Part shown: one piece after another, positions 2,500-48,892 of the stretch | How the letters are laid out: every line of letters begins with the position of its first letter | Position numbering within the stretch: the first letter of the stretch is position 1 | Assembly (NCBI GenBank): GCA_010909165.1 | Contig: MU008212.1 | Span: forward strand, 1 to 64,000 | Direction of reading: 5' to 3' | Source of the DNA: Anthoceros angustus | Lineage: Eukaryota; Plantae; Anthocerotophyta | DNA: 64,000 bases | The notes under the pieces: model-generated | What the model saw: only the letters and a program-made list of their open reading frames with translations | What the model was told of the DNA's origin: nothing | The model's database searches: none | Translations under genes and position numbers: made by a program

Positions 2500-5400
2500 A
2501 TCTAGCTGGCTTAACCTCTTGTACTCCTAACATTTTCATGTGTTTTAAATGCAAATCTCTTCCTAATGACTTGGTTAAAAGGTCAGCTGGGTTGCTTTGA
2601 GTTGGTATATAATTGATATCTATTGTTTTATTTTCTAACATTTCCCGTATGTAATGATACTCATCGCTATATGTTTAGTTCGAGTGGAAAGTGGTTCCTA
2701 GCTAAGGCAATAGCCCCTGTCACATCAGAGAGGTGTAGGTCCATCTTGGGGATAATTCAACTCTCTCAATGCTAACCTACTCCGACTATATCCTTGGAGA
2801 CGAGGTGAGGACCCTATACTCGACCTGTCGACAAAGCAATGGTTGGTTGTTTCTTACTTGACCATGAAATGGGTGCACCTCCTAGCGAATGCATAGCCGG
2901 ATCTGATTTGCGGCTATCGGGATCTCCAAGATAGTCGTGATCAAAGATAAGTCGTTAATTGTAACTTAGATATGCCGAACATGTTTATACATCAATCCTG
3001 TGCATAGTCCCTTTTAAATACCTGAATATTCTCTTGACACATTGCCAATGTTGTCGCCCGTGATTCTCAAAATTGTGAGAGCACTAACTTCAAAAGATAT
3101 ATCGGGTCTTGTGAAGTTACTTAAATATATTAAGGTGCCAACAGATGTCCGTATGGTACTGACATTCGCTTTCTCGCATCTGTTTTAGGGCTCATATCGC
3201 TGTAAGCCTTGTGCCACTTGGAAATGGTGTGGCCGGCTTAGCATCTTCTAGTCCAAACTTATTTAAGCTTTCTTTTATATATTTTGTTTGAACCAAGGAA
3301 ATGGATTTATTACCTCTATTTCTTATAATGTTAACGCCAAGGGCATAACTAAGGTCTCCTGTGTCCGTCATTTCATAATGACTTCTCAACCATGCTTTAA
3401 TTTCAGCTAGATGGGAGAGTGAAGATGAAGCTAAAAATAAGTCATCCACATATAGTAAGAGGTAAATTGTGTAATCGTTTAGTCTTCGGGATATACATGC
3501 TAGCATCTTGCTTTGAACAAAACCATATTTTGTAAGCTTGTCATGTATATCATTATTCCATTCCTTGCGATTGCTTAAGGCCATAAATGCCTTTAATGAG
3601 CCTGCATACATGGTCTTCTTTACCTTTGACTTCATAGCCTTGTTGTCTCATGTATATTTCTTCTTGGATTCGCCATGAGATAGGCGCTTTGACGTCCATC
3701 ATGTGAAGATGTAAGTCATGTTGAGCGGACAAGGCTATTATAATTCGAGGAGGCAAACTTTGCTAGTGCATAGGTAGGTGGTATGTAATCTAAACCCGAT
3801 TCGGTAAACCCTCTGGCTACCAGCCTTGCCTTATATCGCTCAATAGAACCATCACCCTTACGTTTGATTTTAAAGACCCATTTACTTCCCACTATTTTTC
3901 TCCCTTTGGGTGGTTTAACTAATTCCCATGTGGAGTTTTCTACTAAAGAGTTGTACTCTGAATCTACTGCTACCTTCCACAGGTCTTTCTCAGGAGAGGA
4001 AAATGCTTGTTTCAAGGTTAGCGGTTCCTCTGGATCAACTGTGGCTTTGTAAACAGCTTGATAATAAGGTGTGAGAGGAGAAATGGGGTCATCAGAAGTG
4101 ACAAGATATCCCAAAGGTGGTTCCTTCCATCCAGCAGTCCTGCAGGGGTCTAGTCCTAAGATTGTACCTTGGTGCGGTTGTTGAATGTGTTCTTCAATGT
4201 CGACCACTTGTTGAGCGGTCGCGGTGTAACGCAGGCTCTTGTTCGGCTCGTCGAATTCATCCACTTGCTCGCCGACGGCTCATCCTCAAAAGGAATACGA
4301 TCCTCCTCACGAATTTCAACATCATAGTCGATTTCATCATCGCTTAAATGAGGTTCTTCTAAATCGGATCCGGAGTAGTTGGTCGCCTTGGAATATATTC
4401 TAACTCCTCCTCCTCCAATGAGGTTCATCCATAGGAGCTTGCGGAGGAGTGAATGAATGATGACAAAATCATCGTCATCAAAAGTGGAAGGCTCGGATGC
4501 GCAGAGGAAGGAGCATCGGGAGTAATGGGAGCAGATGCCCCAATAGGAGAAAGAATATGAGATTCATGAAAGGTCACGCCCTAGCATAAATGAGCTTTCG
4601 GGTAGATGGGTCAAATAACTTGTAACCCTTAATGCCTTCTGTAGCCAATAAAGGTATATTTGGCTGCCTTGGGATCGACTTCTGCGTTGTACTTTGGGGA
4701 TGAACACATAAGCGGGGATCCAAGATTCGTAAATGATCAATGAAGGTTTTCTCCAAGAAAAGCTTCATATGGAGTCATGCCTTGACGGAAGTTGGCGTCT
4801 ATTAAGGAGATATGTTGTCAATATAGCTTCACCAATAACTTTTAGATAATGTAGCTTGGGTGAGCAAACATGTGATCTCGGAGGCGTAAATTTTGTTTTC
4901 TCGCCATTTTTGAGGTGTGTGTACCACACTAAGTTGTTGCGCTATACCTTCAAGCAAAATTCAGCAAAATTTTGAAGTGAACTCTCCTCCATTATCGGAG
5001 CGAAGAGTTTTAAGCTTCTGTCAGAAGTCTCTCGCCCACATCATATATTCTTTGAAGAAAGAAAAGGCGACTCTTATGGCGGAGGATGTAGGTGAGGACG
5101 AACCGGAATAATCATCATGAAGGTTAAAAATATCTACAACCACTAAATGAAGGTGCGTATAGGACCACAAATGTATGTGAACCAACTCTAAGGGTGCCTA
5201 GCCCTCCGAGGATGGATTGTGGAATGGAGCTTGATGTTTTGGTTATGACGCAAGCTTCACACCGTGAGAGGTTCAAGTTTAGGAACAGGAGTTCTATACA
5301 GTTTCCTTAGACATTTGGATAAGCTTTTGGCTATTCGGATGACCTAATCGAGCTGCCAAAGCATGGTGCTTGAAGAGTGGAATGGGAGGCTACATTGATG

Positions 5401-7864: not shown

Positions 7865-9360
7865 AGTTGTAGCACAAGACGGTGCCCATTGGATTGTTAC
7901 CCCGCCCCAGCTGGTTACGAACGCCTACCCCCGTGGAGTTACGTAGGTTGGCCGGGTACATGGTTTTTGGGTACACTTGGGTTGTTGAACCTCACGGATC
8001 GGTATGTATCTTCCCGGACCCTCTTCCTCCTCTTCCTCATATCCCGGTGTACCCTTGTCGTCGGACAATTAGCTTTGGAGTGTCCTGCTGCCCACACGTT
8101 GAGCGAAGAGGTTGGCTCGTGGGTTCGTGACGACTCTCCGCCTCTCATGTTCCTTGACCGCATTAAGATGGAATTTCGAATTTTGCCATCATCTCCTCCA
8201 TCTTGTTCCCTGTTGTTCTACTTTCTTGGGCTGCCACCTCGGCCTCCCTCCTCGCTTATTCGCGTCCTTTTTGCGTACATCGCCTCTGTTTTGCCCTTGC
8301 CCGGCTCCTTGTTGTCCGTGCGACCCTTCATTTCTTTTTCCATTTGGCGCTCCTCATCGATGGCCTTCCTCGCCGTCACTCGTTTCCTCCTCAGGAACTT
8401 TCATGGAATCTTCATGGAGCTCTCTTCACGATGAACTTTCTTAGGAGGATGAGGATCCCTTCTTTTTCCGATCCAGGCTTCTTCTTCTCCTTCTTAGCCT
8501 TCCTCCTCCCTTGCGGGTTGGATTCCTCATAGTTTAGCGCCTTGATAGCCTTGCCCAAATTCTTCTCCGCTTGTAACCTTCGTGTCTCCCCATCTTAGAA
8601 CCCGGGCCTTTAGCGAACCACCGTGCACCGCAACTCAGTGAGGCCGCCCGATCGCGTGGTGTGAAACCTCTCCACATACGCTGCGGTTTCCTTCTTTCCT
8701 CTGCAGCTTTTCAAGCTTGGACAACACGTATCCCTCCACGTCAAGCCCCCTGAACCTCTCACAGAAGGCGGTTTTTAACTCTTCATAGGTTACTGGAGGT
8801 GTGGCTGACTTGAGGTATTCGCGCCTATACCACTTCGCTGGACCCCCCCGAAGAACTCCATAGAACAGCTGAATACGCTGTGCATCTCCCGCTTCCTGGT
8901 TTGCAAATGTCAGCTGCTCAAAACGCTCAACAAATTCATCAGGGTCTTCATACCCCTTCCCCTCTCCATACAGCGGGTAAGGTTGCTTGGTGGTGACCAC
9001 CACCGGCACGGTGGTGGTCATGACTATCGTTGCTGATTCGGCCGTGGTTGGTCAACAAGTTCTGCGGAGTCGATTGATCTCCAGCGATGCACACTTTTGG
9101 AAGAGGTCGATGGATGGAATTGGTCAGGTTCCTTGGCGGTGGTACCTCGTCCAAGTCCGAGGTTGGGGATCTTGCTCCAACAAGATCGGACCCCGTCCCT
9201 GGTTGCTTCCTTACCTCCTTCTCCTTCCCAGTCGTCTTCTGGACCCTCCTCAACTCGCGGTTTGCAACCCTTTTAACCTTTCCGATTGCTTGGCGTTGTC
9301 GCTTCTCTTGTGGCCTTCCGTCCGACTCGAACCCTCGACTCAACCGTGGCATCCATCTAC
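7865..9360 (-). pseudogene. Ty3/Gypsy (Athila/Tat-like) gag, frameshifted
   Basis: ORF 8635-9021 has retrotransposon gag features (EDPDEFVERFE...LRGGPAKWYR...TYEELKTAFCERF). A zinc knuckle (GHSKANCP) lies near 8060-8110. Confidence 0.8.
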
Positions 9361-9431
9361 CTAACTAGATACACTCCAAAACTAGACACCTAAGCTATGG
9401 TTAGTCCCCTATAACCTTGTGACGGTTTCAT

Positions 9432-9449
9432 TCCCGACAGCAGCGCCAA
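9432..9449 (-). promoter_or_regulatory. Athila/Tat-type primer binding site
   Basis: Minus strand ...ACA TTT TGGCGCTGCTGTCGGGA resembles the TGGCGCCGTTG(C/T)CGGGGA PBS of Athila/Tat elements. Confidence 0.75.
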
Positions 9450-9451
9450 AA

Positions 9452-10292
9452 TGTGGAATGGGTTTTGCATCGAAGGCAAAGAGGCCACATTTACCCTCTA
9501 TGTCGTTATAGTCCTAGGATTCGATCCCAAGGGAATGGTGTTGTGTCAGGTGTGCTAAATCTATGGATTCTAGACCTACGTCGCTCACTACCCCACCTTC
9601 TCCCACCTGCCCAAACCCACCACCGTGGTAGACTCGGCCACCCCGGTGGCAGTTCGACCATGGCGGGTCCCACCACAGCGCCTTTCGAGTCTATTCGTCA
9701 CGGCTTCTCACGGACCTAGGGCTATGGGCATCGGACACCTATATACACCTCACTTTACTTAGAATTTCGATTCCACGCTTCCACTCCTCTCGCATTTATT
9801 TTCCCTCACACTCTCACAATCCCTCCCAGTAGCACTCATCTACCCCCCGGAACCTCCCTTCCAATGAACTCTCCCTCGTCTCACGGGCCACAGACCCCTC
9901 CTCCTTGGGCCACAGACCCCTCCTCCTTGGGCCACCAGACCCCTCCTTGGGCCACCACAGACCCCTCTCTCATGGAATGAACACACAGTGGCGGTTGGAA
10001 GAGGATCGGGAAGAAAACCCGGTCGGTGCTTGGGCGATTCGCCTTCCGGATTCCACCTCGGCCTTCGGCAATTCCTACCTCTTTTCGGCTACCTTCCGTT
10101 ACCGCGTGGAGCTTGGCCACTCCGCTCTCGACCATCCAGATCTTCCGGCCTTCTTGTGACGAGAAGGCGGTGCGCGAACCCCGTTTGATGCGACGTCTCC
10201 AATCAACCCCTCGGCGGTTCGATACGGAAGTTCACACGAAATCGCGCTTGAGACACCCAAAGGGTCTCTTATACATCGGGCGTGGTCCAACA
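9452..10292 (-). repeat. Probable Gypsy LTR (~840 bp)
   Basis: Starts TGTGGA next to the PBS. Putative far end TCCAACA is a near-inverted terminus followed by the pyrimidine tract CTCACTTCTCTTT (PPT on minus). The right boundary is inferred from one copy only. Confidence 0.55.
9885..9968. repeat. ~20-22 bp tandem repeat, about 4 copies (GGGCCACAGACCCCTCCTCCTT) inside the LTR
   Basis: Read directly from the sequence. Confidence 0.85.
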
Positions 10293-10399
10293 CTCACTTC
10301 TCTTTAGTGTCTAAAATTGTAGCTCCTACCACGGCGCCCTTGCAATCTAAGCAACAGACTCTACGGTGATGGAACTCCCTATCCCTCGAAAAACCCGGT

Positions 10400-13300
10400 C
10401 CTAGGCTATCGCGACTCCCCTAAAATCAGCTGCCGCCTCCGCGATTCTTTGCCTCGCCCTCGGCCCATGGGGACCCCTCTCGCTCTTGACCTCGATCCGG
10501 ATTTTCCCCACAACCTCCACCTCACTCTCACTTTGCAATTTCCCTCGCGCCTTCCAGCGGACGTTGCGCGTGACCTCTATGTCCATTGTCCGCTCCTCCT
10601 CATTTGGACAACCATACTGTGCTCCTCCCTCCATGCTCGCTGCGCCTCGCTCATCTCTTCCGGCACCACTTGCGGAGGATAGGCGCCCGCTCCTACTCGA
10701 AGGAACCAGCGTAGCGCTGTGGCGGTCAAGATGTCTGACCGGTGGTTTACGCCCCTCCTGTCCCAACAACCACATACACGTTTAGAGTGAGCACCCGCTC
10801 ACCATGCGGAAGCCGAGGACATGAGCATCCTCATCCGGGCCGTCGCCCTTCGATCTGAGGTCCTTACCCTCTCCTCCGTGGACAATCACAGGCCGGTGCT
10901 GTTGATTCTCCGGATCATCCCTCCATCTGCGACACTCCTGCCGGTGACTTCCCCACCTCGGTTCCCGTTCCACGGCGGTGGCTGGTTTAGCCACCGTGGT
11001 GGTTCTTCCCACGGTGGTTGCTTGGCTCTGCGGTGGGCTGTTGCTCGGCCTTCTTGGTTTGGCCACCTCTCTCTTGACTCGGCCCTAGCCGTCTCTTTCC
11101 GCTTGTACCTCTCATGACTTCTTGAATTTCTCCAAGGCGCCATATTCCACGCTCCACGGACTCGCGAGACCTCATCTTGAAGCTCTTCAATTGTAGCATG
11201 CCGCCTTGACTGATTTACTAAAGCTTCTGCGAGTGGACATGTCCCGCCGCTCCTGTGCCTTGCATAAGGCCGCCCGCACTCCGTCTGCGCTCCTCGGCGC
11301 CTTGCTCTCGCCTTCGGGCTTCCAACTTCTCCTTGAGCAACTTCTCCTGTTGGCCTTGCACTCGGCGGTAGAGCCATGGGCTGCTTGATCGAGGAGATCA
11401 CTGCGTCATGCCATGGCGAAGTCAAACCACCAAATCCCCAAATTGGGCTGTCCCTTTGCCCATCCGCCTCCACAACAATTCTCGGCGGTGTCTCCTATCC
11501 CCACCTCGGCCAGACGGTTCGGTGAAATGTCGCCAAAATGTCCGGAGCTCGTTGCGGTCTCGGCTGCTGAAGTTAACCCCTCCTCTCCTAGGGGTTGGTG
11601 CCTTGCCTCTTCCCCGCTTCATTCTCTAGCGGCGATTCATCCCCACACAGGAGGAGCAACTTGCCATTTCCCTTTATTTTCTCCTCCTTTACCCGCGTTC
11701 TCTGTCTTGACACAGTGACCACAGGTGTGTGTGGGTTCCTCCTCTGCGGTTTCTCCTCCTTCTTTCGGCCGTTGCCGCCCTTCGCTTCTTACCCTTGGAA
11801 ACTTCCCCACCCTCTTCCGAACCTTCGAGGCGCATTCCCAAGCTGGAATCCTTGCAGAATCCTCCTTCAATTCCTCCTCTTCTACCTTGAGTTCCTGGCC
11901 GGCTTCCAACCATGCGGGCGGACCGACTTCAACTCGTTAAACACCGAATGCGCAAATACATGAATCGGAAAAGGCGAAATCAAGGAGGGCCGAGGGGAAG
12001 GAGAGAGTAAATTCGCCCTCTCCTCACGGGCTCTTTCGAAAATCATCCTTCCCCAATCAATTTGTGTACCCTTGACCACCTCGTGAAGAAAAACCAAGAA
12101 GTGATCCGCCATATGATCCGACTTAGGTTACAGGAAACACAAAATCCATTTGGCCAATCCCACCGGTGCAGAACACGAGTTGGCGAGTCACCCGACCATT
12201 GTTCACTCTCACTTCCCAGGCTTCATGGCGCGGCTGCGGCTTTCAAGGTCTTCTTTTGGGGTCAATCACCAAGCTCCCATCTTGATGCTTCTCGCCCATA
12301 CCTTTCGAAGAGGGCCAAATCCCGATTCTGCGGCCTTTTCCTCGCGTCACCCTCTTGCGACTTGGTCCTTAATTGCCGCACTCTTGCACCAATGCACGGT
12401 ATCGTAGCACCATTTCTTCTCCATGAACTTCAGCCCGGCTCACGCACGGTGCCGGCTCTCACTTTCCGATGGTCCATGTTGGGCCCGCTGCGTCATGCCA
12501 TGGCAGTCAAACCCAAATCCCCAAATTGGGCTGTCCCTTTGCCCATCCGCCTCCACAACAATTCTCGGCGGTGTCTCCTATCCCCACCTCACCGGACGGT
12601 TCGGTGAAATGTCGCCAAAATGTCCGGAGCTCGTTGCGGTCTCGGCCTGAAGTTAACCCCTCCTCTCCTAGGGGTTGATGCCTTGCCTCTTCCTTCATTC
12701 TCCCCTAGCGGCGATTCATCCCCACACAGGAGGAGCAACTTGCCATTTCCCTTTATTTTCTCCTCCTTTACCGTTCTCTGTCGTCTTGACACGTGACCAC
12801 AGGTGTGGCGTGGGTTCCTCCTCTCTGCTGCTCCCTTTTTCGCCGACCCCGTTCGTGCCGTTCGCTTCTTACCCTTGGAAACTTCCCCACCCTCTTCCGA
12901 ACCTTCGAGCGCACTCCCAAGCTTCTGGAATCCTTGCGAATCCTCCTTCAATTCCTCCTCTTCTACCTTGAGTTCCACGGCTTCCAACCATGCGGGCGGA
13001 CCGACTTCAACTCAGTTAAACACGGAATGCAAATACATGAATCGAAAAGGCGAAATCAAGGAGGGCCGAGGGAAGGAGAGAGTAAATTCGCCTTCTCCTC
13101 ACAGGCTCTTTCGAAAATCATCCTCCCCAATCAATTTGTGTACCCTTGACCACCTCGTGAAGAAAAACCAAGAAGTGATCCGCCATATGATCCGACTTAG
13201 GTTACATGGAAACACAAAATCCATTTGGCCAATCCCACCATGCGACACGAGTTGGCGAGTCACCCATTGTTCACTCTCACTTCCCGGGCTTCATGGCCGC

Positions 13301-13760
13301 TGCGGCTTTCAAGGTCTTCTTTCGGCTGAGTCAATCACCAAGCTCCCATCTTGATGCTTCTCGCCCGCCACGCTCGAAGAGGCCAAATCCCGATTCTGCG
13401 GCCTTTTCCTCGCGTCACCCTCTTGCGACTTGGTCCTTAATTGCGGGCGCACTCTTGCACCAATGCGGTACATGTAGCACCATTTCTTCTCCATGAACTT
13501 GAGCCCGGCTCACGCACGGTCCGGCTCTCACTTTCCATGGTCCATGTTGGGCCCTGCGTGAGTGAGATTTGACGCGGCTCGGGCGCCATCTCCTTCTCTC
13601 GTTGTTTCCCAAAACAAAACCTCGACTACCCGGATTACGGTCGAGAGAAAAAAATCGAGCCGCCCTCGCGCTCCTTCCACGCCTCCTCGCGAACTTGCGG
13701 CGCCCGATTTCTCTCCTCCGCCGCCGCTGTCTGATCGTCGCGCCCTTCCTCACCTGCAGT
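10400..13760 (-). pseudogene. Decayed accessory ORF region of an Athila/Tat-like element
   Basis: Fragments such as FLVFLHEVVKGTQIDWGRMIFERAREE resemble plant retrotransposon accessory-ORF domains. R/E-rich coiled-coil-like ORFs occupy 10400-11470. No pol motifs seen. Confidence 0.45.
11401..13553. repeat. Tandem duplication, 2 x ~1075 bp (11401-12487, 12488-13553)
   Basis: Near-identical units. CTGCGT occurs at all three boundaries (11401, 12488, 13554). Confidence 0.9.
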
Positions 13761-14137
13761 GAGGATTTGGCTGGCGTGGTGTGCGCCCCTCTTCTTGCTG
13801 CGGCTCTCGCTCCCCCTCACGGAAAGTCGCGACCTCGCCAGTCTTGGGTGTGCCCTTCTCGATTCGCTCCGGTAGTAGTCGCTCCGCCACTAGGGTTGTA
13901 AATTCCCCAGTGCATCGTCCGTTTCTCGGCCACCGTGGTGGAACTAGCCACCACCCACTTGACTACTCAGCTGGCATATTGTGAGCATCCTAGCATATAT
14001 AGACACCTTTTATTCTAAAATTCCCAATACCCAAGGACTCTATTTCTACCCACCCTCGGGTCAAACCTAAGGGTCGAAAAATTATTATTATCTCCAAGGG
14101 CCAAGGACCATTCCGTATAAAAGACTCGGATGATTCT

Positions 14138-15914: not shown

Positions 15915-17007
15915 CAAAGAAGCACCTAATGACATGTAGTGCAAGGACTTGCATGCCAAGATCAAACTCGCCCCACATGTCACGAAGACACACAATTAGG
16001 CTCATTGTATGCTAATTTCGAGGACGATGTAAATAATGTAGGTTTTGGAGCTTTATTTAGAACTAGCAATGAAGTTGGCAAAAATATTGTTGGTGTTTAT
16101 TGTCCATCGATTGGATACATTCTTGCAATTGATGGATTTGTTGATACCATCATGTACCTAGATAGATAAATAGAAGAAGAATAACAATACCCCATCTTGA
16201 GTATGAAACACCAAAACTTTGAAAACCTATTCAAAAGTGCAAAGAAACGCGATATGGATTAGGCGAGGTCCATGCCAAACTAGTAGTTCAATGATAGTTC
16301 AAGCTTAGTCTTAGTCTACATCACCTTAGTAGACATCGATTAGGCACGCTTAGGCTATGAATATCGATCTCAAATATTTTTCACAGGCGTAGGCACGACC
16401 CTGATTCTTCTTGTTCAAGGTACAATACACTATTTCAAGATCGCAAAGTGGACATTTGAAAGGTCCTTTAGATAGCTTTGTACGACTTTTGTGATTTTGG
16501 TTTTGCCCGACTCTTACGCTTGCCCATGTTTCTCAATGTCTTGTTCGTGAGTTAGGCTCTTTATTTTCTTGGGATCTAAAAAAGCGAAAGGAGTTACTAA
16601 GTTCAATCGTATTTGTTCACACGATGGAACATATATAGTCTTTCTTCGGTGAAATTTCTCAGTATTTATTCAAAGATATTTTGACTCACTCAAAAAACCC
16701 TATTGTGGCTATCATGATGTGCAAGCTTGATCACATGTTGCTCACCTAATAAACCCCCACGGTCCTAGTTCATGTAGTTCAAATCCGCCACTTGGCCAAC
16801 TACTAGTTGAACTACATTGCCGATCTTGAGGAGGTCTTTACTATGTAGAAAAGGTTTTTTTTTTTTTTGGTTGGAAGTTTCATGCCAAAGCTGGTTAAAA
16901 AGTAACGTTTGGGTCGGACCGTTCGATGATAGTTCATACATGCCACATAAGCAATCATGCTTTAGTAGAGAAATTAATCCAAAATAGAATGGGTGTAGTT
17001 TCTCTTT

Positions 17008-18172
17008 GATCTGCCATACTAGCAGTCCTCCACTCTACCAACTGAGCTAAGATCGGTTCCATTGAGTATATCCGATCTGCCATACTACAATCCTACACTC
17101 TACCAGCTGAGCTAAGATTGGTTCCATTGAGTATATCCGATTTGCCATACTACAATCCTCCACTCTACCAACTGAGTTAAGATCGGTTCCATTGAGTATA
17201 TCCGATATCTGCCATACTACAATCCTCCACTCTACCAACTGAGCTAAGATCGGTTCCATTGACTATATCCGATCTGCCATACTACAATCCTCCACTCTAC
17301 CAACTGAGTTAAGATCGGTTCCATTGAGTATATCCGATATCTGCCATACTACAATCCTCCACTCTATCAACTGAGCTAAGTAAGATCGGTTCCATTGAGT
17401 ATATCCGATATCTGCCATACTACAATCCTCCACTCTACCAACTGAGCGATCGGTTCCATTGAGTATATCCGATATCTGCCATACTACATCCGATATCTGC
17501 CATACTACAATCCTCCACTCTACCAACTGAGTTAAGATCGGTTCCATTGAGTATATCCGATATTTGCCATACTACAATCCTCCACTCTACCAACTGAGCT
17601 AAGTAAGATCGGTTCCATTGAGTATACCCGATATCTGCCATACTACAATCCTCCACTCTACCAACTGAGCTAAGATCGGTTCCATTGAGTATATTCGATA
17701 TCTGCCATACTACATCCGATATCTGCCATACTACAATCCTCCACTCTACCAACTGAGCGATCGGTTCCATTGAGTATATCCGATATCTGCCATACTACAT
17801 CCGATATCTGCTATACTACAATCCACCACTCTACCAACTGAGCGATCGGTTCCATTGAGTATATCCGATATCTGCCATACTACAATCCTCCACTCTACCA
17901 ACTGAGCTAAGATCGGTTCCATTGAGTATATCCGGATCGGTTCCATTGAGTATATCCGATCTGCCATACTAGCAGTCCTCCACTCTACCAACTGACCTCC
18001 ACTCTACCAACTGAGCTAAGATCGGTTCCATTGAGTATATCCGGATCGGTTCCATTGAGTATATCCGATTTGCCATACTAGCAGTCCTCCACTCTACCAA
18101 CTGAGCTAAGATCAGTTCCATTGAGTATAGCCTCCACTCTACCAACTGAGCTAAGATCGGTTCCATTGAGTT
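17008..18172 (-). repeat. Tandem array of ~16 tRNA-Tyr 5' halves (unit ~64-71 bp)
   Basis: Minus-strand unit: GGATATACTCAATGGAA leader + CCGATCTTAGCTCAGTTGGTAGAGTGGAGGATTGTAG + intron-like TATGGCAGAT. This matches the plant tRNA-Tyr(GTA) 5' exon CCGACCTTAGCTCAGTTGGTAGAGCGGAGGACTGTAG. Partial sub-units of 21-24 bp are interspersed. Confidence 0.92.
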
Positions 18173-18178
18173 ATCTGC

Positions 18179-18261
18179 TAGTATCTGCCAGAATCGAACC
18201 AGCAACCTAAGGATATCTACTATACTAGAGTCCTCTGCTCTATTGGCTGAGCTAAGATCGG
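18179..18261 (-). pseudogene. Full-length degenerate intron-containing tRNA-Tyr with CTA at the anticodon position
   Basis: Minus strand CCGATCTTAGCTCAGCCAATAGAGCAGAGGACT-CTA-G, intron, ATCCTTAGGTTGCTGGTTCGATTCTGGCAGATACTA. B-box intact; A-box and acceptor stem damaged. Confidence 0.85.
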
Positions 18262-18683
18262 TTGATGAAATTATGTGTTTTGTTTAGAGTAGCGCTATGT
18301 TTTAATGGTAAAATCTAGCTTTTAAACCTTAAAACAATTCAGTTCAGCTGGAAGCGGTTCAGTTTCAGTTTTAAGCAGGCCAGTTCAGCTTTCACGAGTT
18401 CAGTTTCACTTTACACAATTGGAGTCAAGCTCTTGAGAATCAATCAAGTTAAAACGATTTCATTTAAGCTTGAAAGAATAATGTATACAAGCCGAATAAT
18501 TCCTCTACGCGGCACAATTACCAATACTCAGTCAGCGTGTCCACATCCTGTCCAAGGATATTTCATATCTCGAGTCCCAAGGTTATAGGCAGTCACTTCT
18601 TCCGAGAGCAAGCACGAAATCGGTGCCGACCAGAGCACAACTGGAGGAGCTCGCCCTTCTCCCCCGCTGAATTCATGCGGTCT

Positions 18684-20366
18684 TCAATCGAGCTTCAGGC
18701 GGGAGATAACGCTCTGGACATCCTTGTCACCACGGCCGCTTAAGTTTATCACCAAGCGCGTTCCATCCTTCAAAGTAGGGCACAGTTTTTCCAGGTATGC
18801 CAGAGCATGAGAGGTCTCCAAAGCCGGGATGATGCCTTCCAACTTGGATATTCTCTGAAACGCTGCAGCCGTAGGTGAACCATTTAGATGATAATAGCAC
18901 AAGGGAGGAGACACTGGAGATGAAAGAAATGTGCGCAGAGTAGGTTACCTTCAAGCGCCTCGGCGTCAGTGATACTGTAGTACTCGGCCCGGCCCATGTC
19001 CTTGAAGAAACTGTGCTCAGGGCCCACCCCAGGGTAGTCTAACCTGCAGGCCAAAGTGCACAGCGAGTTAGAAAGCTGGAGGAGAAGGCTCATGCTCAAT
19101 CCCTCCAAAAGATTGACAGATTGAAGTCCGGTGGCAAGGATACCCTGCGCTGATGGAATATGGCTCGATGACCTGCCCATCGGAATCTTGCAGCAAGTAA
19201 CTCATAGCTCCATGGAGCACACCAACTTCTCCTATCGATAACGTTGCAGCATGCTGTTTTGTGTCCACTCCCAGACCGGCTGCCTCTACGCCAATCAGTC
19301 TCACATCCTCGTCGTTGACGAATTCATGGAACAGCCCAATAGCGTTGGAGCCCCCTCCGACGCATGCCAGCAGCACATTAGGTTTCCCACCCCACTTCTC
19401 CAAAGCCTGCTGCCTAGTTTCCTTGCCAATGACGGCATGGAAGTCCCTGACCAGCATGGGGTAAGGGTGAGGACCACAAACAGACCCCAGGATGTAGTGA
19501 GTGCTCTCTACGTTGGTCACCCAGTCCCTGATAGCCTGTGACGTTGCGTCCTTCAAGGTGGCCGTGCCAGAGTGCACAGGCCGAACCTCGGCTCCCAGAA
19601 GACGCATGCGGAACACATTCAGAGCCTGCCTCTCCATGTCCCTTGCTCCCATGTAAACCACACACTCCAAACCAAAACGCGCACACACCGTCGCTGTAGC
19701 AACTCCATGCTGCCCTGCACCCGTCTCCGCAATGATCCGCTTCTTCCCGATCTTCTTCGCAAGCAGAGCTTGCCCCACCGCGTTGTTGATCTTGTGAGCC
19801 CCGGTATGATTCAAATCCTCCCTTTTCAGATAAATGAGAGGGCCTCCATCAGCACGTCGGTAATACTCCGTCAGCCGCTCAGCGAAATACAAAGGCGACT
19901 CCCTCCCAACGTAATCCTTCAAAATCCCAGCCACCTCTTTCTGAAAGCCACACCAAAACCACAATCAAATCTCCATTCTCCTGCAAAAAACCCCTCCAAA
20001 CCCCCCAGTTCCACCCACCTGAAAAGCTTCATCCATCGACACCTCCAGATAAGCAACCTCCAGCTCCGACAGAGCAGTCATGAGCGTCTCCGGCACATAC
20101 TTCCCGCCAAACTTGCCAAACCGGCCAGAAGCATCCGGCCGCTGGTAGTCACGGAACACGCGCTTCTGCTCCCCATCCACCGGCTTTTCGAGGGCCACAC
20201 CGCACTGGACTCCTGCGACTCCAGCCCGGCTCTTGTTTCCTCTGCTGATAACGGGAATGCGGATGGGATTCACAGCATAGCTGTAGTTCCAGGCCGAGAG
20301 CGCCTGCTCATCGGAAACAGCTAGGCGGCACGCCACGCCGCCAGACACCGCCGCAGCCGCCGCCAT
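18684..20366 (-). CDS. TSB1: Tryptophan synthase beta chain, type 1, with plastid transit peptide; 4 exons, ~472 aa
   Basis: Exons 20366-20019, 19940-19144, 19043-18949, 18862-18684 join in frame across GT-AG introns. Motifs [28 protein letters not shown] (PLP lysine), [18 protein letters not shown] and NLSGRGDKD. Confidence 0.97.
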
Positions 20367-20942: not shown

Positions 20943-22895
20943 ATGGCATGGAAGGCATTTAATGCATTTCTAGCAGACCCCAAGCTGCTGGTGCTTGACT
21001 CAAGGTCTGCACGGTCGTATGCTGACCGCCACATCCGGGGCTCCATCAATGTGGAGTTGAAGGGGAGAACTTTGGAGAAGGTTGCTGGACCTGATAGGCC
21101 CAGCTGGAAACGGGACTGCTGGTGGGACAGGAATGTTTTTGTGATACCGGCTGTTGCCTCGAAAGTGACTGGGAGTGGGAGCAAGAAGCGGAAAAGTCAT
21201 GTGCTGGATGACAGGGGCACGAGTAGGTGCAGATGGACCGAGGAGGAAGCAGTACCCGAGGAAGAAGACCCGGTGGTTGCATTTTTGCGGAGGGACAAAA
21301 ATGTTAGGTCTGTGAGGGTTTTGGAGAGTGATGGTGAGTGTGTGTGTGTTGGGTGTTGCTCGTTTGTTAAGTCTCAGGTGTGCAATGTTTTACATGGTCT
21401 GTACTGGTGGCACGGCCCTTGCCTTGTCTGTAATGGTTTTGGTTGGTTTTGCTGCTGCAGATCATGGTGTGGACCCCTTTCGATCGTTTGCAAAGAGGTA
21501 TCCTTTCTTGGTAACCAAATCAACGAAGTCTGCGAGCATTGCTGGGTATCCGGCAGAGGTATAGTTGCCCTGTCTTGGCCGAAGGTTTGGATAAGTTTGT
21601 TGTGTTCATTCGACTCGTTCGGTCTACTCGTTTGACTGTTTTCGTTCCCCGCCAGATTGTGCCAGGTTTACTCTACTTGGGTGACCAGGAGCATGCAATG
21701 GCGGAAAAGAAGCTGGAGGAACTAGAGATTACTCATGTGCTTACCATCCACACCGATCGGCTGAAGATAGGGAGGCAGTTTTTGCAGCTATACTGTAACT
21801 TGGCTGGTAAGTAGGATTGAATTATGCAAGGTAGGTAGGGTGGGTGCAGGAGAGATGTCTTGGATGTGATCAATTTTCCTCTCTATCAGATGACCCAAAG
21901 GCGGATATTGCACAGTTCTTTGACCAAGCATTTGAGTTTGTTGAGAGCGCAAAAGAGAAGGGTGAGCGCGTCTTGATACACTGTGGGGCTGGAGCAAGCC
22001 GTTCGGCCACCTTAGTCGCCGCTTACTTGATGAGAGTGAGGAATTGGAGACTTGACCGTACACTTGAGTAAGTTTCAAAGTTGTTGCTTTGCAAGATCTT
22101 GAGCTCTGACTGGGATGACCTTGGAACCGGGCCGGCCAAATGCACTTAAGGATTACGGATTTGTTCCTCAGGTTCTTGCGGGAGCAGAGAAAGCAGGTTC
22201 TGCCGAATCCAGGATTTGTAGATGCGTTGGAGAGATATGAGAAAGAACTTGGTGGTCGGAGAGCCTTGAAGCTCTCAGAAAACCCTACTGCCTCGGACCG
22301 GTACAGTGAATCACCGTCACACAGTCGAGGTCTGCACCTTGAGATTGTAAAGGTAAGAGCTTTCTTCCGCTATGGGAGTTACATTGTGTAGGGTTCTAGT
22401 ACCTGCAGAACCTATGGGTTCAGTGACTCTGGGCTACCACAGGTATTGCAAAATGCAGGCGTGGTTTTTGGTTTCGTCTATTCTGTAATGTATTTATCTG
22501 CTGTGACAGAATGGGGAGCTCTGTGGGACTGTTCTGCTATCAGACAGGAATATGTTCTTGATTGGCCGTGCCAAAACATGCCACATTGTCCTGGATCATG
22601 CATCTATATCACGTCAGGTTGATGTCATATGTTGTAAATTTGTCGTGTTCTTCTTGATTGCACTTAGTCGAATCACAAAATTCGCCATGACTAACTTACT
22701 GGCTCTGTTCTTTGCTATCAGCATGCAAAGATAGAGATAATGGAAGGTCAGACGGTTATGCTGACAGATATGGATTCTGTCCACGGAATTTCCGTGGATG
22801 GGAAGCAGATTTCAAAGGGTACCACTGTTGAGTTAAGCTTAGGGCAAATAATACGGTTCGGTGCCAGCACCCGGAGTTATGTGATGAGGGACTAG
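20943..22895 (+). CDS. Dual-specificity phosphatase with N-terminal rhodanese-like and C-terminal FHA domains; 7 exons, ~426 aa
   Basis: Exons 20943-21333, 21461-21558, 21656-21806, 21890-22067, 22172-22352, 22510-22617, 22722-22895 join in frame with GT-AG introns. Rhodanese-like LVLDSRSARSYADRHIRGSINV; DSP motifs IVPGLLYLGD, IHCGAGASRSAT (CX5R) and PNPGF; FHA motifs FLIGR..CHIVLDHASISRQHA, DMDSVHG and IRFGASTRSY. Confidence 0.9.
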
Positions 22896-23858: not shown

Positions 23859-25821
23859 ATGGCTCACAGGCACAGTTTCAGGAATCCAAGCCCTGCACTC
23901 TCAAACGAATATGACGCAGTGGATCTGCTGTTCAGGGACTGCGCATCCAGCTCTCGCCAGCGAACATCCCGACTGGAGGATAACTATGATCCGACATTCC
24001 CCGACCACCCCGTGATGAGCGGGTATCTATGCACCTGGGCCAACTTCATCGCCTTCGCAGACAAGCCCGCCTTCAAATGGGTGGACGCGAGCTGCAGGAG
24101 ACGGACTCCATCACCTACAGAGAGCTGAACTCTGCCGCATCCGCCATCGCATCACACCTTCTGCACCGGACTCCCGCACCCTTCTTCAAAGGAGATCGAG
24201 TTCTGGTGATGTACCCGTCGGGCCTGGACTTCATCAAGGTACAAGCAGTGGCAGAAAATGCTTCTCCTTATCGTGCCATGCCTGTTTCCCGAACTTGGAA
24301 TTGACCCATAATGCGCGCAGATCCTGTTCGCCTGCAAACGGGCTGGCCTCACTATAATCCCGATCTCGCCCCAGATCCCGGCACATGCGGCCGCAGGACG
24401 TGGAGCGGTTGGCTGCCGTCTGCAGGAAACTTCCCCACGGGCAATCCTCGCCCCGGCCGAATACGCCGCGTCCATCAAGCGGAGGGCGGGGGACTGGGTA
24501 CAGCAGCGGCTTCAGCTACATCCGTTTTGGCAGCGCTGGGTGGGTGGACGCGGTCCGGGAATCGTCATCCTCTCCTCCCTTACCCTCCAACCAGTCTACT
24601 TCTCCTGCTCCCCGGACGACATCTTCCTGCTTCAGTACACCTCCGGTACCACCGGCAGGCCAAGCCGACACTGATCTCTGCGGGCTCCGCAGCGCACAAC
24701 GCTAGGGCAGCGCGCCGAGCCTACGACCTAGGCCCCGCCACCGTCATCGCGTCATGGCTCCCGCAGTTTCACGACTGCGGCCTCATGTTCACAATGCTGA
24801 CGGTGGCGTCCGGGGCGACGGCCGTGCTTTCTTCCCGACGGATTTCGCCGCCCGGCCCTGCCTGTGGCTGGAGATGGTCTCCGCCTTCAAGGCCTCCTGT
24901 ACCGTGGTCCCGGGCTTCGCTCTCCCGCTCTGCGCGCGACGCCATGAGCAGGAGGCCGGCACCCGCTCACCCTGGCCTCCCTCCGCCACCTCATCCTCAT
25001 CAACGAGCCCCTCTTCGCGCAGGACGTGGCCGCCTTCCTCCGCGCCTTCTCCCCTGGGCCTCCAGAGCTCGGCCATCGCCCCGTCGTACGGCCTGGCGGA
25101 GAACTGCACCTTCGTGAGCACTGCCTGGCCGGGGCCCTCCTGCCCTGCACACCAGGGCCTGCTTCCGGTGGCCAGGATCCCTTCCTCCCCAGACATGGAC
25201 ATCCGGGTCGTGAATCCGGCAACAGAACGGGAATCAGCACCAGGCAGCGAAGGGGAAATCTGGGTGAGCTCGCCGAGCAACGCATCCGGCTACGTCTCCG
25301 ACCCGGATCTCTCCCGCCGCGCCTTCCACGCCAGGCTCAGATTCTGCTCCTTGCCCCAGCCCGCCTCCTTCCTCCGCACCGGGGACCTGGGCAGGATCGT
25401 GGGCGGCTTCCTCTACGTCACCGGGCGGCTGCAGGACGTGATGCTGGTGGAGGGCAGAACCCAGCATCCGCACGTCCTGGAGAGGAGCGTGTTCCAGAGT
25501 AGCCCCGGCTTCCGCGCAGGCTGCTGCGTCGCCTTCTCCGTCTCCGCCTGCCTGGTGCTTGTGGCCGAGCTGGTGCACCAGGAGCACGCCACCGCACAGT
25601 GCTTGCCTGCCATGGCCCGCCTGGCCCAGCACGCTCTCAGTAAGAACCACGGCATCCACGACTGCACCATCGCCCTGGTGGCTGCCCGCTCCATCCCTAA
25701 AACAACTTCCGGGAAACTTCGCCGCTCGCTAACTCGCCACCTTTACCTCAACCACCACCTCCCAATCCTGCACTGCATATCCTTCTATCAGACTTTCTCA
25801 ACCTCCCGCTGCAGGTTGTAA
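23859..25821 (+). CDS. Fatty acyl-AMP ligase (FAAL / FadD-like) copy A; 2 exons; frameshifts possibly sequencing errors
   Basis: Plant FAAL-like N-terminus (NYDPTFPDHPV...WA...DKPAFKWV), intron 24239-24320, and adenylation motifs LLQYTSGTTGRPK, SWLPQFHDCGL, SYGLAENCTFVS, EGEIWVSSPSNASGY, FLRTGDLG and IPKTTSGKLRR. Confidence 0.85.
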
Positions 25822-27289
25822 ATTCCACACTTTCGTCTGGTCGTACAAATAACTGTGACATGGAAATCTGGTACCTATCGAATCTGGAGATAATTATTAT
25901 TATCTAAGCTACCAGGTATATATTCTTGGTACGTTTTGTAATTAAATAATCCTTGTTGCTCCAAGGGCTATTAGGGATTGATAGTTGATACAGAATCTTT
26001 AAAAAGCTTACGTAGGACTTTTATCATGGAATCTTAATTGGTACCATCTTGGAAATGTCAAACAAGAATATGAACAACCCGAAAAACACAAATAACTTTC
26101 TTCACCACTTAATGTAATCAAGAATGATAAAAATAACTATATATAACTTAAAACTAGTATTATAATACTGGGTAAAGTTTATAACCATAATCTTCAAGAA
26201 CACTAGTATTTTATCATGAACTGTTGTAGCTTTGTTTGTATTTTATTACTTGTAACTATTCCCACTATAGATTCTCAATTTTATGATCTTGGGTGCAATC
26301 CAAAAATATTTAGCCCTATAGATCACAGCAAAGTTTTTAAAATTCATGTAGATCGATGTTGAATGATTTCGTAACCAAGCTTGAAGGATTTGATCTGATT
26401 ACGGATCACGAAGAGTTGATCTCATTCATTACTTTGCCTGATTTTAAAGGCAATATCAAATGTACTTATAACTTATTGGCATGTTTGTGGTGTGTTGATT
26501 GTGGGCAATTTGATGTTGGAAGAAAATGTAGGGACCATGTTGGCGGATATTGTGCGCATAGTGCATGTACATTTGAATATTTGTACATTCATCAACAAGA
26601 CATTTGTCCAGCGCCATAGGAAATTGAATTTTATTATAAACATGAACCATGTTATTGTTTCATGTATATAATTTATTTATCTCAAAATTTTATTTTTTAC
26701 ATAAGATCAAAATATATTTAAAGGATTTATGTTTTCTATGAAAACAATGGTTTAGCTCCCAAAAAGCATCCAAGGCGTGAATAAACCACTAAGGTTAGAA
26801 AGATGCAACATTTGGGTAAGATGTATCAAGACATGAAATCTTCAACTCACAAATTTCATCTCTAAAATATCTCATGAGTGAGAAATAGGAGTTTTAATTA
26901 AATAAATAGATGAATTTTAAGTAGATTATGACTTTGGTTAAGGGTAGTCAACAGAAGCCTAAATCTTAGACCTACCTAATTTAGCCCCTCAAGCCCTCAT
27001 GGTTAATGCTTGTGTATATGCTGTTTGATTACAAAGATTACCATAGATTAGAAAATATATGACTTTTATTGGTTTAGAATAAGGTATTTAAATATTCATT
27101 TAAAAGCTCAAAATATTTAGACTAGATCTTGTTGATTCTACAATGGTCACCCGAGAGTTTTACCTAGATGACAATCTAAAGCTTCTTTCATATATGTTGA
27201 TTTTTAATAACTAAATAAGAAAAAATATAGAATGGTCGCTTATAACGAGCTACGTGTTCGTATAATAATTACATAAATTACTACAAGAA

Positions 27290-28080
27290 TTCAAAGTGAA
27301 ATGGCCAATCAAAAATGGTTTGAGGTTTTGCTTGGGTCCATCTTCAATCAAGCATAATACAAAACCAAGGTAGCTAACTTTCTCCATGAGAAACTCACAT
27401 TTCTTTTATAAACAAAACATTTCTTCGATGTTCGCGAAAACATATTTCTTTTGATGTTCATAAAAACACATTTCTTTTGATGTTCCGTGCCCAGTTAGAA
27501 GAAGGGCTAAGTGTGGTTTGTGCTCTTGTGCATCCTTAAAAAATCACATTTTGTTATGAAATGAGGTTTTGGCAAAAATATTGTGATTTTTAAAATTTAA
27601 ATCATTTGAATCCACATTTTGCTTCTTTTGAGCAGGCTCCTCTTTCTCACGGTCCCGTCAAGTGCCTCTTTTCAGCATACTCCTCTTTCCTACCCTAGCC
27701 CGTCAAGTTAACGTTCGATGCAATTTTCTCCCGCAACATGGAATCTACAATTCTCCCATTTGAGCATCCATGAAATTCTCCGCCCGGCATTCATGGGATT
27801 ATTTCCTTCCGAACCACGGCATTCCATTCGTCAGGAGAAGAGTCTCTTCTCCATGAAGACCCAGACTTCTTTGTTCTTAATTGAGCGAGGACCATGATGA
27901 CTCCCCACCTCCGACTCCCTCTCCTCCTCTCGTCTCCCTCATTAATATCTACAAAGCGTTTATCCCTTGCGGATACAACATAGAATCTTTCTCCTCCTTG
28001 GACTTAGCCCCATAGCCCCTGTACAAGTGAATGAGGAGAGGGTGAGAAGAAGAGACTTCACCCTTGTCCAAGAACTTGAG
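27290..28080 (-). mobile_element. Degraded Ty3/Gypsy remnant (RT/RH connector, possible chromodomain), copy A
   Basis: KCEFLMEKVSYLGFV...MDPSK...IFDWP is a Gypsy RT-type motif (clearest in copy B ORF 46143-46355). A weak chromodomain-like AENFMDAQ lies at 27700-27900. Confidence 0.6.
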
Positions 28081-29940
28081 CCTCTCTTATGCTAAGGAGA
28101 GTAAACCGTTTTTTATAAGACCTTTTTCGTGTGTAATTGCTTACATCTTTCGATCCCAACTTGCTCTTGCCTCTCTTGCTTACATCTTGCATGATCATCA
28201 CACATTGCACACATGCGATCGTAGGCTACCAAATTCTTTACACTCTTGCACATGCACACAAAAGAGTAGCTCACGTCCACACATCGCCAACCTACACACT
28301 CGCATACACTTGTAGCCATACATGCGGAGCGGACCTACCCCAAACTAGACGCAATCCGCACACCAGACATTCATAGACACTACACATTGCTACACAGACA
28401 TACTAGCCACTTTAGCTGCTGCAAGAGGCAAAGGAGATGGCTCTTATTCCCACAGCGCAATTAGAGGCATGCAATTTGCACGCCTGCAGACAGAATAGTA
28501 GCTCATGAGCTGCACATCGCCACACAGCAGAGCAATACTGAGTGGAGCAGCTTTCATGCTCGCGCACACTTGCAGGCACACATGCCAAGCTTGACCGCCA
28601 CAAAGTTGTAGCTCATCCTGCGCATCGGATGCCACCTATTCCGGATACCTTGAACCAAACCACACAAGCCTGGCAGCGTCGGGCGTCAAGTTGAAATTGA
28701 AACCTAGACACTAGGCGGATGCTCCTTTCTTTGCTCCCCTTGCGGTCAGTAGGAGCCCAATGTTTGGGAGGTGTTCCCACCTTCCACGACATTGATGGGA
28801 CCGCTTCCTACAAAACAAGCTGGCGGCAAGGGACACCGCCGGAGCATTGAGAGAGGCCAAAAAATACACACCTTCTGGGTTGCTTCCGACTCGCGCCTTC
28901 CCTCCCTTTTCCGCTCTAGTCGGTGACCGCATTGTCTCGAGTAGGCATGCAAACGGAGAAATTGTTGTGCTTGGGCGCTCGCAGTAAATGGAGGCACTTT
29001 GGTGACGAGTGCTTCACTCCGCCGGGCATGAAGATGATGGCGTGGCACTGGCCGACTTGCGGTGAGCAGGTGCAAGTTCGAAATGTATTTGCCTTGTATA
29101 AGACTTAACCATAAAATGATTTTAGAATATCACTTAAATTTTGGCCAATTGTATCACAGTGCCGCTTGGTCGCTTGTTTTTAATACATAACGTGGTACAC
29201 CAAAATGGACATACATCCAAACACCTTGCCTCGTGGTGAAGGGGTTGCTAACAAAGTGATTGCACAAGATATTAACCACAAGTGGTTGAATGCCTTGCAC
29301 GTGAACTTGCGGTGGCGATTTGGATGAGCATCTCCACATTGATGCTATATTGGGGTCCATATTGATATTCCGCAGCATGTTTGGATGTGTCCTGACTTGA
29401 AGGAACAAGCGGAGGGTCCAAAAGCGAGAGGATTTTTGACTTGGAGCATGAGGTTCTTGTCCACGAGGCGTGAGACATTTCTTCGTTCGTTCGTCCACCG
29501 TATGTTCATTTAAACTTATGCCACTCGATGTGGACCCACTACCACCGGCATGCGGCGTCAGTTGCCCTATTGCATCGGGAAGCGATCCACTTCTGCATTA
29601 AGATGTAGAAAACACAAGCATCATGTCCATGTGGCAAGTCCATCGACTTTTGAGCCATGTGGGCACTCGGACCGTGATTATTACTTGTGCTGTATATTTT
29701 ATTTTATTTTAATTATGTACCTCTAGAACTAGTGATGGGGCATGGGCATCAAAATGACATAAACATAGATGGTTGTCAAATTATGGACCCTTATGGCGGA
29801 TACCTCGGCTCTAGTCAATTACAGCCCTAATTTTCGAGGATTTTTACAAGTGTGCTCGAAATGCCATGTTCAAGTCATAAGAAACCCCACATATAATAGA
29901 CCCAAAAGCCCGTCATGTATATTCAGCCCTTTAAATATTA

Positions 29941-29990
29941 TTGTATTATGATAAATATCCTTAGGTCGGTAGTTTGATTCCGGAGATCGA
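29941..29990 (+). pseudogene. tRNA-Tyr 3'-half relic, copy A
   Basis: TTGTA, AT-rich intron-like spacer, then ATCCTTAGGTCGGTAGTTTGATTCCGGAGATCGA, compared with canonical ATCCTTAGGTCGCTGGTTCGAATCCGGCAG. Confidence 0.65.
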
Positions 29991-30314
29991 ATTGGTCATT
30001 GGTAGTTAAAGAGGGTTTCTATGGGATTGCTTCCACGCTCGAGTCCGATGGGGAGTTTTACATTTTCACAGCCTTGAGCTTTTGCCAAAAAGGAAGCATT
30101 CGGCTGGTATAAGTTATTCTTTCAAGCTTAAATGAAGCTGAACTTGATTCTTAAGATTAAGAGTTGAACTACAATGGTTAAAGCTCAAATTTATTGTTGA
30201 AAGCTAGATTAAAATTTTAAAGCTGAGTTGAATTGTTATGAACTGAATGTGGAAAGGTGAAGATGCGCTCTGAACTCGTTTTCCATGTTGATAAATCCTT
30301 ACCCACTGGTTCAG

Positions 30315-30383
30315 TCCATCTCCGCGCAGAACTGTAGTTTTGCAGATATCCTTAGGTCGCTGGTTCGATTCCGGCAGATGGGA
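30315..30383 (+). pseudogene. tRNA-Tyr(GTA)-like gene lacking the D-arm, copy A
   Basis: TCCATCT pairs with AGATGGG (7-bp acceptor stem, then discriminator A). ACT-GTA-G, intron TTTTGCAGAT and an intact 3' exon with B-box GGTTCGATTCC are present. D-arm/A-box are absent and the anticodon stem is mismatched. Confidence 0.8.
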
Positions 30384-30450
30384 TGCGTAAGTTGGAAGTG
30401 GTTAAAGTTGATTCTTTTCCCATCTAAATCAATCTCTATGTACCCTCCCT

Positions 30451-30545
30451 CGATGAGGGCGGCTGCAAGGTGAGAAATCTGCAGGCGAGATGCAGTCTTT
30501 CGATGAGGGCGGCTGCAAGAAGAGAAAGCTGCAGGCGAGATGCTT
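30451..30545. repeat. ~50-bp direct repeat, 2 copies (TCGATGAGGGCGGCTGCAAG...CTGCAGGCGAGATGC)
   Basis: Read directly; also present at ~49361-49455. Confidence 0.75.
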
Positions 30546-30774
30546 CTGACAAGTACTGGACGACGAGGTTTCTCCTTTTCGTGGATAGGTCGGTGCATGG
30601 CAGTGTGACATGCTTGCTTGGGGAACGTGTACTTGAGCGCGACCTTCCCCAACTGCGAAGATGCCATCAACTTATGCCATCGATCTCAGCAGCAGAGCGA
30701 AGTCTCGAATGCCTGCCTATATGCAACCCTACATCTACGATTCCTTGCAATTAATTCCAGTCTGAGACCCAGAG

Positions 30775-31443: not shown

Positions 31444-31562
31444 TCCTCGCGAGATTCAGATCTCTTCTTCCCCCGCTTACTTGTTGTTTCCAAGTTTTAA
31501 GTTTATTGAACGTGAGGTCTCCTGCTCAGGAACTTTTCCCAATACTTACATGGGCCTTCAGC

Positions 31563-31672
31563 TTCAGCCCCAGACTCTCATTGAAGCAACATTCTCTCCA
31601 CAATGGCCTCCCACAATGCAGCCCCAGACTCTCATGGAAGAAACATTCTCTCCACAACGGCCTCCCACAATG
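31563..31672. repeat. 54-bp tandem repeat, 2 copies, downstream of germin
   Basis: CAGCCCCAGACTCTCAT(T/G)GAAG(C/A)AACATTCTCTCCACAA(T/C)GGCCTCCCACAATG x2; also at ~50470-50580. Confidence 0.8.
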
Positions 31673-31707
31673 CAGTAACCCTAGAACGTCCAAAGGGGTT
31701 TGCGCAT

Positions 31708-42827: not shown

Positions 42828-42830
42828 ATA

Positions 42831-48841: not shown

Positions 48842-48892
48842 TTGTATTATGATAAATATCCTTAGGTCGGTAGTTTGATTCCGGGAGATCGA
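48842..48892 (+). pseudogene. tRNA-Tyr 3'-half relic, copy B
   Basis: Duplicate of 29941-29990. Confidence 0.65.

Follow-up and report, generated by a model that had tools for sequence, protein, structure and literature searches.

Transfer RNA genes of plants can occur in clusters, the repeated units of which reach an upper size of about 1.5 kb. These plant clusters repeat whole genes, each with a promoter and a terminator of its own (PMC13437025, PMC13578239, PMC7544208, PMC10701932), as was also stated in the original prediction on the locus described below. The Ser-Tyr-Tyr, Pro and Cys clusters of Arabidopsis (PMC7544208, PMC13437025, PMC10701932) have grown head to tail from a tRNA gene, tRNA-Tyr included, and show duplication of whole blocks, with units that start at about 0.4 kb and carry upstream elements, A and B boxes, and poly-T terminators. 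The clusters are methylated and largely silent. A second, looser class, which has been known for a long time, is that of the small tandem repeats with a tRNA gene as their ancestor, and such satellites are regarded as non-coding. A tRNA-derived satellite DNA of higher plants was reportedly described by Benslimane et al. in 1986 (Nucleic Acids Res 14:8111), and these satellites are said to be high-copy repeats of about 180 bp with a remote tRNA similarity only.

Here we analyse a stretch of 64,000 nt from the genome of Anthoceros angustus (contig MU008212.1, positions 1 to 64,000; hereafter, the window), with a G+C content of 49%, in line with the value of about 0.5 published for this species (PMC7027989). 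Its minus strand bears an array of about 1.25 kb (17008-18261), where a degenerate full-length copy of a tRNA-Tyr gene, which we call U00, stands first and is followed by 18 head-to-tail units that end at position 17008. The array resembles the Arabidopsis clusters in its head-to-tail growth from a tRNA gene for tyrosine and in its block duplications, and judging from the sequence it would also share their methylated and largely silent state. In contrast with those clusters, the array unit spans only 65-67 nt, keeps just the 5′ exon and the intron along with 4 terminal nt of the 3′ exon, lacks a B box and a terminator of its own, and is separated from the next copy by 14 nt. The array consequently fails the definition of a whole-gene cluster, and it fits the looser class of tRNA-gene-derived tandem repeats, from which it differs in detail and not in kind. 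Unlike the tRNA-derived satellites of plants, it is a single locus of 1.25 kb, and its tRNA-Tyr origin, its intron and its deletion junction can still be read base by base. We regard it as quite probable that this array is an inert tRNA-derived minisatellite, that is, the wreck of one nuclear tRNA-Tyr gene in a decaying tRNA-Tyr cluster.

Among other mobile or repeated sequences derived from tRNAs, the tRNA-derived SINEs also have a tRNA-related head, and some 140 nt beyond the downstream end of the array the sense strand has a run of 15 A (16854-16868, minus strand). In contrast to SINEs, the copies described here are in tandem instead of dispersed, and the units are devoid of a B box. A reading of the locus as a SINE, from a tRNA head to an A15 tail, was rejected after blastn comparisons, where the homology to the other copy in the window was found upstream of the tRNA and not downstream. 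A limited search of the literature on arrays of internally deleted tRNA genes, or on minisatellites of truncated tRNAs, found no paper. Exact-match scans of metagenome contigs for the inter-unit junction and for the deletion junction gave no match either, which says little, as the collection is not a plant one.

Organization of the array and its surroundings

Tandem Repeats Finder reported periods of 65-67 nt along positions 17008-18171, with scores of up to 1061. A 20-nt probe corresponding to the D arm and anticodon stem of tRNA-Tyr gave 17 matches in the window, all of them on the minus strand and inside 17026-18149, versus none expected in shuffled sequences. These matches, together with the presence of a canonical tRNA-Tyr core and the homology to U00 and to two further tRNA-Tyr-like copies of the window (copyA and copyB, see below), indicate that the tandem units come from a tRNA gene. 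Individual units were delimited by cutting the minus strand at an invariant spacer, which resulted in U00 (18261-18161, including its trailer) and 18 units (17008-18160, minus strand). Their consensus of 65-67 nt is made of a 37-nt tRNA-Tyr 5′ exon, a 10-nt intron, the motif (AT)CGGA and a 14-nt spacer. According to this parsing, the 5′ exon is complete (through G37) in 15 of the 18 units; 12 of these 15 carry the GTA anticodon in the form TTGTAG, and the form CTGCTAG is found in the remaining three, which are the edge units U02, U04 and U18. The head-to-tail array of tRNA-Tyr halves that had been predicted, with about 16 units, a majority of GTA anticodons, and one full-length degenerate tRNA-Tyr with a B box ahead of them, is therefore real.

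The unit alignment revealed a rather diverse inventory around a common theme. U06 (17850-17916, minus strand) is equal to the 67-nt consensus, whereas other units depart from it. U04 (17941-18025, minus strand) is of the edge type, with CTGCTAG; 19 nt are duplicated within it, and its 7-nt complement of the acceptor strand is perfect. Of U03 (18026-18049, minus strand) only a stub of 24 nt is left, with the 5′ acceptor strand fused straight to CGGA and the spacer, and it has a 24-nt twin in U05 (17917-17940, minus strand), the two being part of a 109-nt block duplication with 99% identity. U01 is shortened to 45 nt, and a 21-nt internal duplication is present in U07, U08 and U11. The terminal unit, U18 (17008-17056, minus strand), also of the edge type, is cut after GATC and adjoins unique sequence. 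Above the basic period, Tandem Repeats Finder detected a higher order of repetition, with one period of 109 nt, present in 2 copies of 99% identity, and further ones of 132 nt and 223 nt (98%), so that the array combines a head-to-tail order with block duplications, as plant clustered tDNA arrays do. Short tandem repeats are error-prone in genome assemblies, and it could be argued that long-read assembly or polishing had produced a wrong number or order of units. However, the unit-specific indels and substitutions fall into consistent higher-order blocks, and both ends of the array pass cleanly into unique sequence, which makes an artefact of this kind extremely improbable.

The closest neighbour is a gene for the tryptophan synthase beta subunit (TSB), whose last two coding blocks lie at 18684-19964 on the minus strand (NCBIfam trpB, E 1.8e-130). 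Its last exon encodes the motifs GIIPALE and SGRGDKD, followed by a stop codon at 18686-18684, and U00 begins 423 nt downstream of this stop on the same strand. In a protein word search with the TSB exon, all matches were land-plant proteins of 82-88% identity, with no near-identical protein among them; the identity to TSB proteins of ferns, mosses, liverworts and seed plants was 85-88%, which places the window in a land plant. On the opposite strand, at some 0.5-1 kb from the TSB coding region on its upstream side, there is an open reading frame (20943-21635, plus strand) with a weak match to the rhodanese domain.

The rest of the window shows several other features of its own. Two direct segmental duplications were found, one between ~24300-33000 and ~43200-51900 (spacing of ~18.9 kb) and the other between ~40270-42830 and ~57375-59940 (~17.1 kb), both of them with 92-100% identity and containing pieces of genes for an AMP-binding enzyme and a cupin. 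A tandem repeat with units of about 450 nt occupies 32633-33839 (plus strand) in 3 copies, 2 of which are identical over 300 nt. Remnants of retrotransposons are visible as fragments of Copia-type reverse transcriptase (RVT_2) at 3716-4264 (minus strand), 37455-38159 (plus strand) and 54411-55043 (plus strand). Finally, positions 8000-14000 form a block rich in G+C (53-57%), the plus strand of which has a strong negative GC and AT skew, and where a weak match to MTBP_C (10886-11473, minus strand) is the sole one.

Anatomy of the repeat unit and its paralogues

Nucleotides 1-37 of the unit correspond to the 5′ exon of tRNA-Tyr, and when the segment from G18 to G37 is compared with the eukaryote-wide tRNA-Tyr(GUA) core, as taken from the literature, only two differences are observed, both from C to T. 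The 10 nt that follow are assigned to the intron, since each of their bases is matched in at least one of the three 10-nt intron alleles of U00, copyA and copyB. The same 10 nt could also be taken for the 3′ strand of the T-stem and acceptor instead of an intron, and the unit tail was indeed aligned onto the 3′ end of U00 in a global alignment. This possibility was dropped as an either/or choice, because the introns of the two paralogous tRNA-Tyr-like copies match the 10-mer. The double reading of the 10-mer, as an intron and as a 3′ end, is due to a direct repeat common to both: the last bases of the intron are GCAGAT, and GGCAGAT stands in the 3′ exon directly before its final CGGA. The 4 nt found after the unit intron, CGGA, are those that terminate the tRNA 3′ exon, and positions 38-69, which make up almost the entire 3′ exon, are missing.

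With its 65-67 nt and the deletion of positions 38-69, the unit does not amount to a complete tRNA gene accompanied by its own cis-elements, and although 12 units combine the GTA anticodon with a 10-nt intron, CGGA is all that they have of the 3′ exon. The original prediction had correctly recognised the 5′ exon and the intron in each unit; the 3′ acceptor strand, which it considered lacking, is not wholly absent, as its last 4 nt are kept, and the 17-nt leader it proposed is really the 14-nt spacer together with a GGA that belongs to the 3′ end of the tRNA itself. Moreover, the combination of an intron ending in AGAT with the retained CGGA recreates 7 nt that are complementary to the 5′ acceptor strand. 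Such a complement arises in 0.2% of shuffled sequences; it is perfect in two units only (U04 and U14), and in the majority 67-nt unit it is disrupted by the extra AT.

Two more tRNA-Tyr-like copies, both decayed, are present in the window beyond the array. The first of them, copyB (30293-30385, plus strand), is a pseudogene with a scrambled 5′ half, which keeps the anticodon loop intact (CTGTAG), contains a 10-nt intron and the full 3′ exon, and has a B box that is perfect. The 3′ strand of its acceptor reads AGATGGG, versus AGATCGG in the array, and a cupin open reading frame is located about 230 nt downstream. The second one, copyA (29910-29995, plus strand), is a strongly decayed pseudogene 391 nt upstream of copyB, and the similarity between the two is limited to the tRNA part (42 nt, 79% identity). 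The segmental duplication provides both copies with a counterpart 18.9 kb further along, copyA at 48811-48896 and copyB at 49203-49295 (plus strand in both cases). In addition, a 46-nt box in the 5′ flank of U00 (18459-18504, minus strand) is 89% identical by blastn to the flank of copyB (30091-30136 and 48999-49044). Beside this box, a loose tandem repeat of about 20 nt (AAAGCTGAACTG-like) occurs upstream of both U00 (18338-18412, minus strand) and copyB (30132-30237, plus strand). The shared box and repeat indicate that the tRNA-Tyr copies of the window are paralogues of one decaying cluster.

U00 itself (18183-18261, minus strand) is a degenerate, full-length and intron-bearing tRNA-Tyr-like pseudogene. 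It matches the tRNA model of Rfam with 31.4 bits, which is borderline for a gathering score of 29, the match having 13 extra nt inserted at the anticodon loop, and ARAGORN, run with and without introns, called zero tRNAs across the window, U00 included. The sole B-box-like site of the array region is found in this copy, where a pattern search located it at 18190-18200 (minus strand) with 10 of the 11 consensus positions. Its D loop has lost the GG (CCAA for TTGG, that is, G18/G19 of the A box), AGCGG has changed to AGCAG, and the 3′ acceptor strand is broken, the final bases being unpaired. The anticodon is CTA and not GTA, which, given the other defects, is almost certainly a mutation of decay rather than the mark of a working amber suppressor. 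Upstream, the flank (18262-18335, minus strand) is rich in A+T and shows CAA motifs up to position -1, as is typical of plant tRNA genes according to the cis-element scheme in PMC7544208, and no match to a plant U6-type upstream element was found near the array. Downstream, the terminal 11 nt of the U00 trailer (18161-18182, minus strand) match those of the spacer between units. The D loop of U00 also contains TCAGCC in common with copyA, whereas the array units retain the canonical TCAGTTGG, so U00 is not simply the parent of the units; either gene conversion or a separate genealogy for U00 and the units is possible.

Polymerase III signals and putative transcripts

The 1254 nt of the sense strand between 17008 and 18261 are free of TTT, and the first T4 occurs at 16981-16984 (minus strand), 24 nt beyond the array. 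Both observations, already made at the outset, are correct, and the lack of T-runs turns out to be trivial. The lack of TTT in the array results from the repetition of one short TTT-free unit; TTT is also missing from 28% of shuffled units, and stretches of 1.4-1.8 kb without TTTT exist elsewhere in the window on both strands. The missing T-runs carry no weight as an argument for function. A poly-T tract at no more than ~25 nt downstream is found after the last unit only, and none exists behind U00 or the inner units. The position of the T4 is roughly that of the terminator in a plant tRNA gene, and transcription of the ancestral single gene probably ended there.

As for the internal promoter, a pattern search of the array region detected no B box in the units, even when one mismatch was allowed, so the units would not recruit TFIIIC by themselves. 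The exact A-box stretch is retained in 8 of the 18 units, and a pair of intact A and B boxes is found nowhere in the array, as the units have no B box and the A box of U00 is devoid of its GG. The covariance model for tRNA of Rfam did not match the units even at an E value of 10. Weak Rfam matches to YrlA, U6 and others were discarded as noise, far under their gathering scores. The idea of the array as a landing pad for TFIIIC is contradicted by the absence of any B-box-like site in the units. The only possible entry point for Pol III would be U00, a damaged one in view of its A-box G18/G19, its 3′ acceptor strand and its CpG decay.

A read-through transcript made by Pol III from U00 would be physically possible. 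TFIIIC would bind to the B box of U00, which conserves 10 of 11 positions and is preceded by an AT-rich upstream region with CAA motifs, Pol III would initiate a short distance ahead of U00, and all 18 units would be transcribed along 1254 nt without a single TTT until the T4 at 16984-16981 is reached, 24 nt beyond the last unit, giving a precursor of about 1.3 kb to be cut into small RNAs similar to 5′ halves. Several observations, however, clash with this scenario, which we consider very unlikely. U00 has lost the A-box GG and its 3′ acceptor strand, suffers from CpG decay and barely passes the tRNA model, and the absence of T-runs is what a TTT-free unit of 65 nt would give anyway, as in 28% of the shuffles. 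The units drift in an unconstrained manner, and folding gives no support. Moreover, tRNA-processing enzymes make use of the T arm and the elbow, and from units without these elements the release of clean 5′ halves is unlikely. The proposal of a single Pol III transcript as a source of 5′ halves, built upon the uninformative lack of T-runs, is thus left unsupported.

Transcription by Pol II offers a different route, in which the array would travel as a passenger in an extended 3′ UTR or in the read-through of the TSB gene, and would feed siRNAs and RNA-directed DNA methylation, possibly damping TSB. The TSB stop codon at 18686-18684, only 423 nt upstream of U00 and on the same strand, speaks for it, and tandem repeats are common sources of siRNAs in plants. 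The pathway of siRNAs and RNA-directed DNA methylation is summarised in PMC7544208. On the other hand, the poly(A) site of TSB may sit upstream of the array, and nothing in the sequence demands such a transcript, which even if real would be a side effect rather than a built device; on balance, this route seems unlikely. From either promoter, Pol III at the B box of U00 or TSB read-through, sense-strand RNA of the array could constitute a multi-copy source of small RNAs similar to tRNA-Tyr 5′ halves and carrying the AGTGGAGGATT variant, an outcome that we deem highly improbable. If true, the array would be a dedicated tRF locus, and to our knowledge a locus of this kind has not been described in plants.

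Drift, homogenization and origin of the array

The array units have diverged freely within their tRNA part, as the A-box region shows the loss of TTA at positions 7-9 in 3 units, the gain of CTTA in 2 and the change G10A in 3, and further substitutions occur in the D loop and the anticodon stem. By hand count on the unit alignment, the number of distinct substitutions per site is about 0.22 in the 5′ exon, 0.25 in the intron plus CGGA, and 0.07 in the spacer, with the proviso that an automatic tally, which has alignment artefacts, gives other figures. Only 1 of 238 spacer positions differs, and the spacer is the best-conserved segment, which argues that the tRNA-like part is not what is being conserved. 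The fold stability of the units and U00 was no better than that of shuffled sequences (z from -1.8 to +0.4). The changes that indels and substitutions have made to the A box and D arm, the better conservation of the spacer and the shuffle-like folding all indicate that there is no constraint on tRNA function, with the reservation that units 90-99% alike may be too young for a lack of constraint to show clearly.

The distribution of variants along the array is also informative. The 12 central units are uniform for TTGTAG, and the edge units U02, U04 and U18 keep CTGCTAG, which is the older form. Relic edges, a homogenised centre and re-duplicated blocks of several units (98-99% identity) together read as the usual pattern of unequal crossing-over. 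Regarding cytosine methylation, the same CpG has been hit twice independently, since AGCGG, the canonical sequence, is found as AGTGG in the units and as AGCAG in U00. Hand counting on the unit alignment gave about 13 distinct substitutions among units, of which 10 are transitions, 8 go from GC to AT, and 3 fall at the two CpGs of the unit. The ratio of observed to expected CpG is 0.74 in the array versus 0.80 in the window, that is, no strong depletion. These values are suggestive of a methylation decay of the array, weakly visible at present. The alternative to a functional array that had initially been put forward was a satellite, silenced or inert, subject to C-to-T decay, and it is this alternative that our reading of the sequence favours, on account of the lack of a B box in the units, the drift of their tRNA part and the hits at CpGs, the methylation component being suggestive.

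The origin of such an inert minisatellite could be envisaged as follows. In one copy of the gene, a deletion between direct repeats of 6-7 nt (GCAGAT at the end of the intron and GGCAGAT in the 3′ exon) would have removed positions 38-69. The remnant of about 65 nt, composed of the 5′ exon, the intron, CGGA and the 14-nt spacer, would then have been amplified by replication slippage and unequal crossing-over, within the limits of the original transcription unit. An expansion confined in this way would explain why the AT-rich flank with CAA motifs still lies beside U00, and why the T4 is still found just past the last unit. It would also explain the absence of a terminator inside the array, as the duplicated segment would never have reached it. 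From then on, the units would have drifted freely, and they probably share the cytosine methylation and the silence reported for the clustered tRNA genes of Arabidopsis (PMC7544208). If the array gives rise to any RNA, this would stem incidentally from read-through, without having been selected for.

This locus calls for caution in the interpretation of similar sequences, since a tidy array of tRNA halves without an internal terminator does not need a function to be explained. Should small RNAs spanning the junctions exist, the array would be a rare genomic source of tRFs. With a deletion junction that is legible to the base, the array of A. angustus illustrates a possible start of tRNA-derived satellites.
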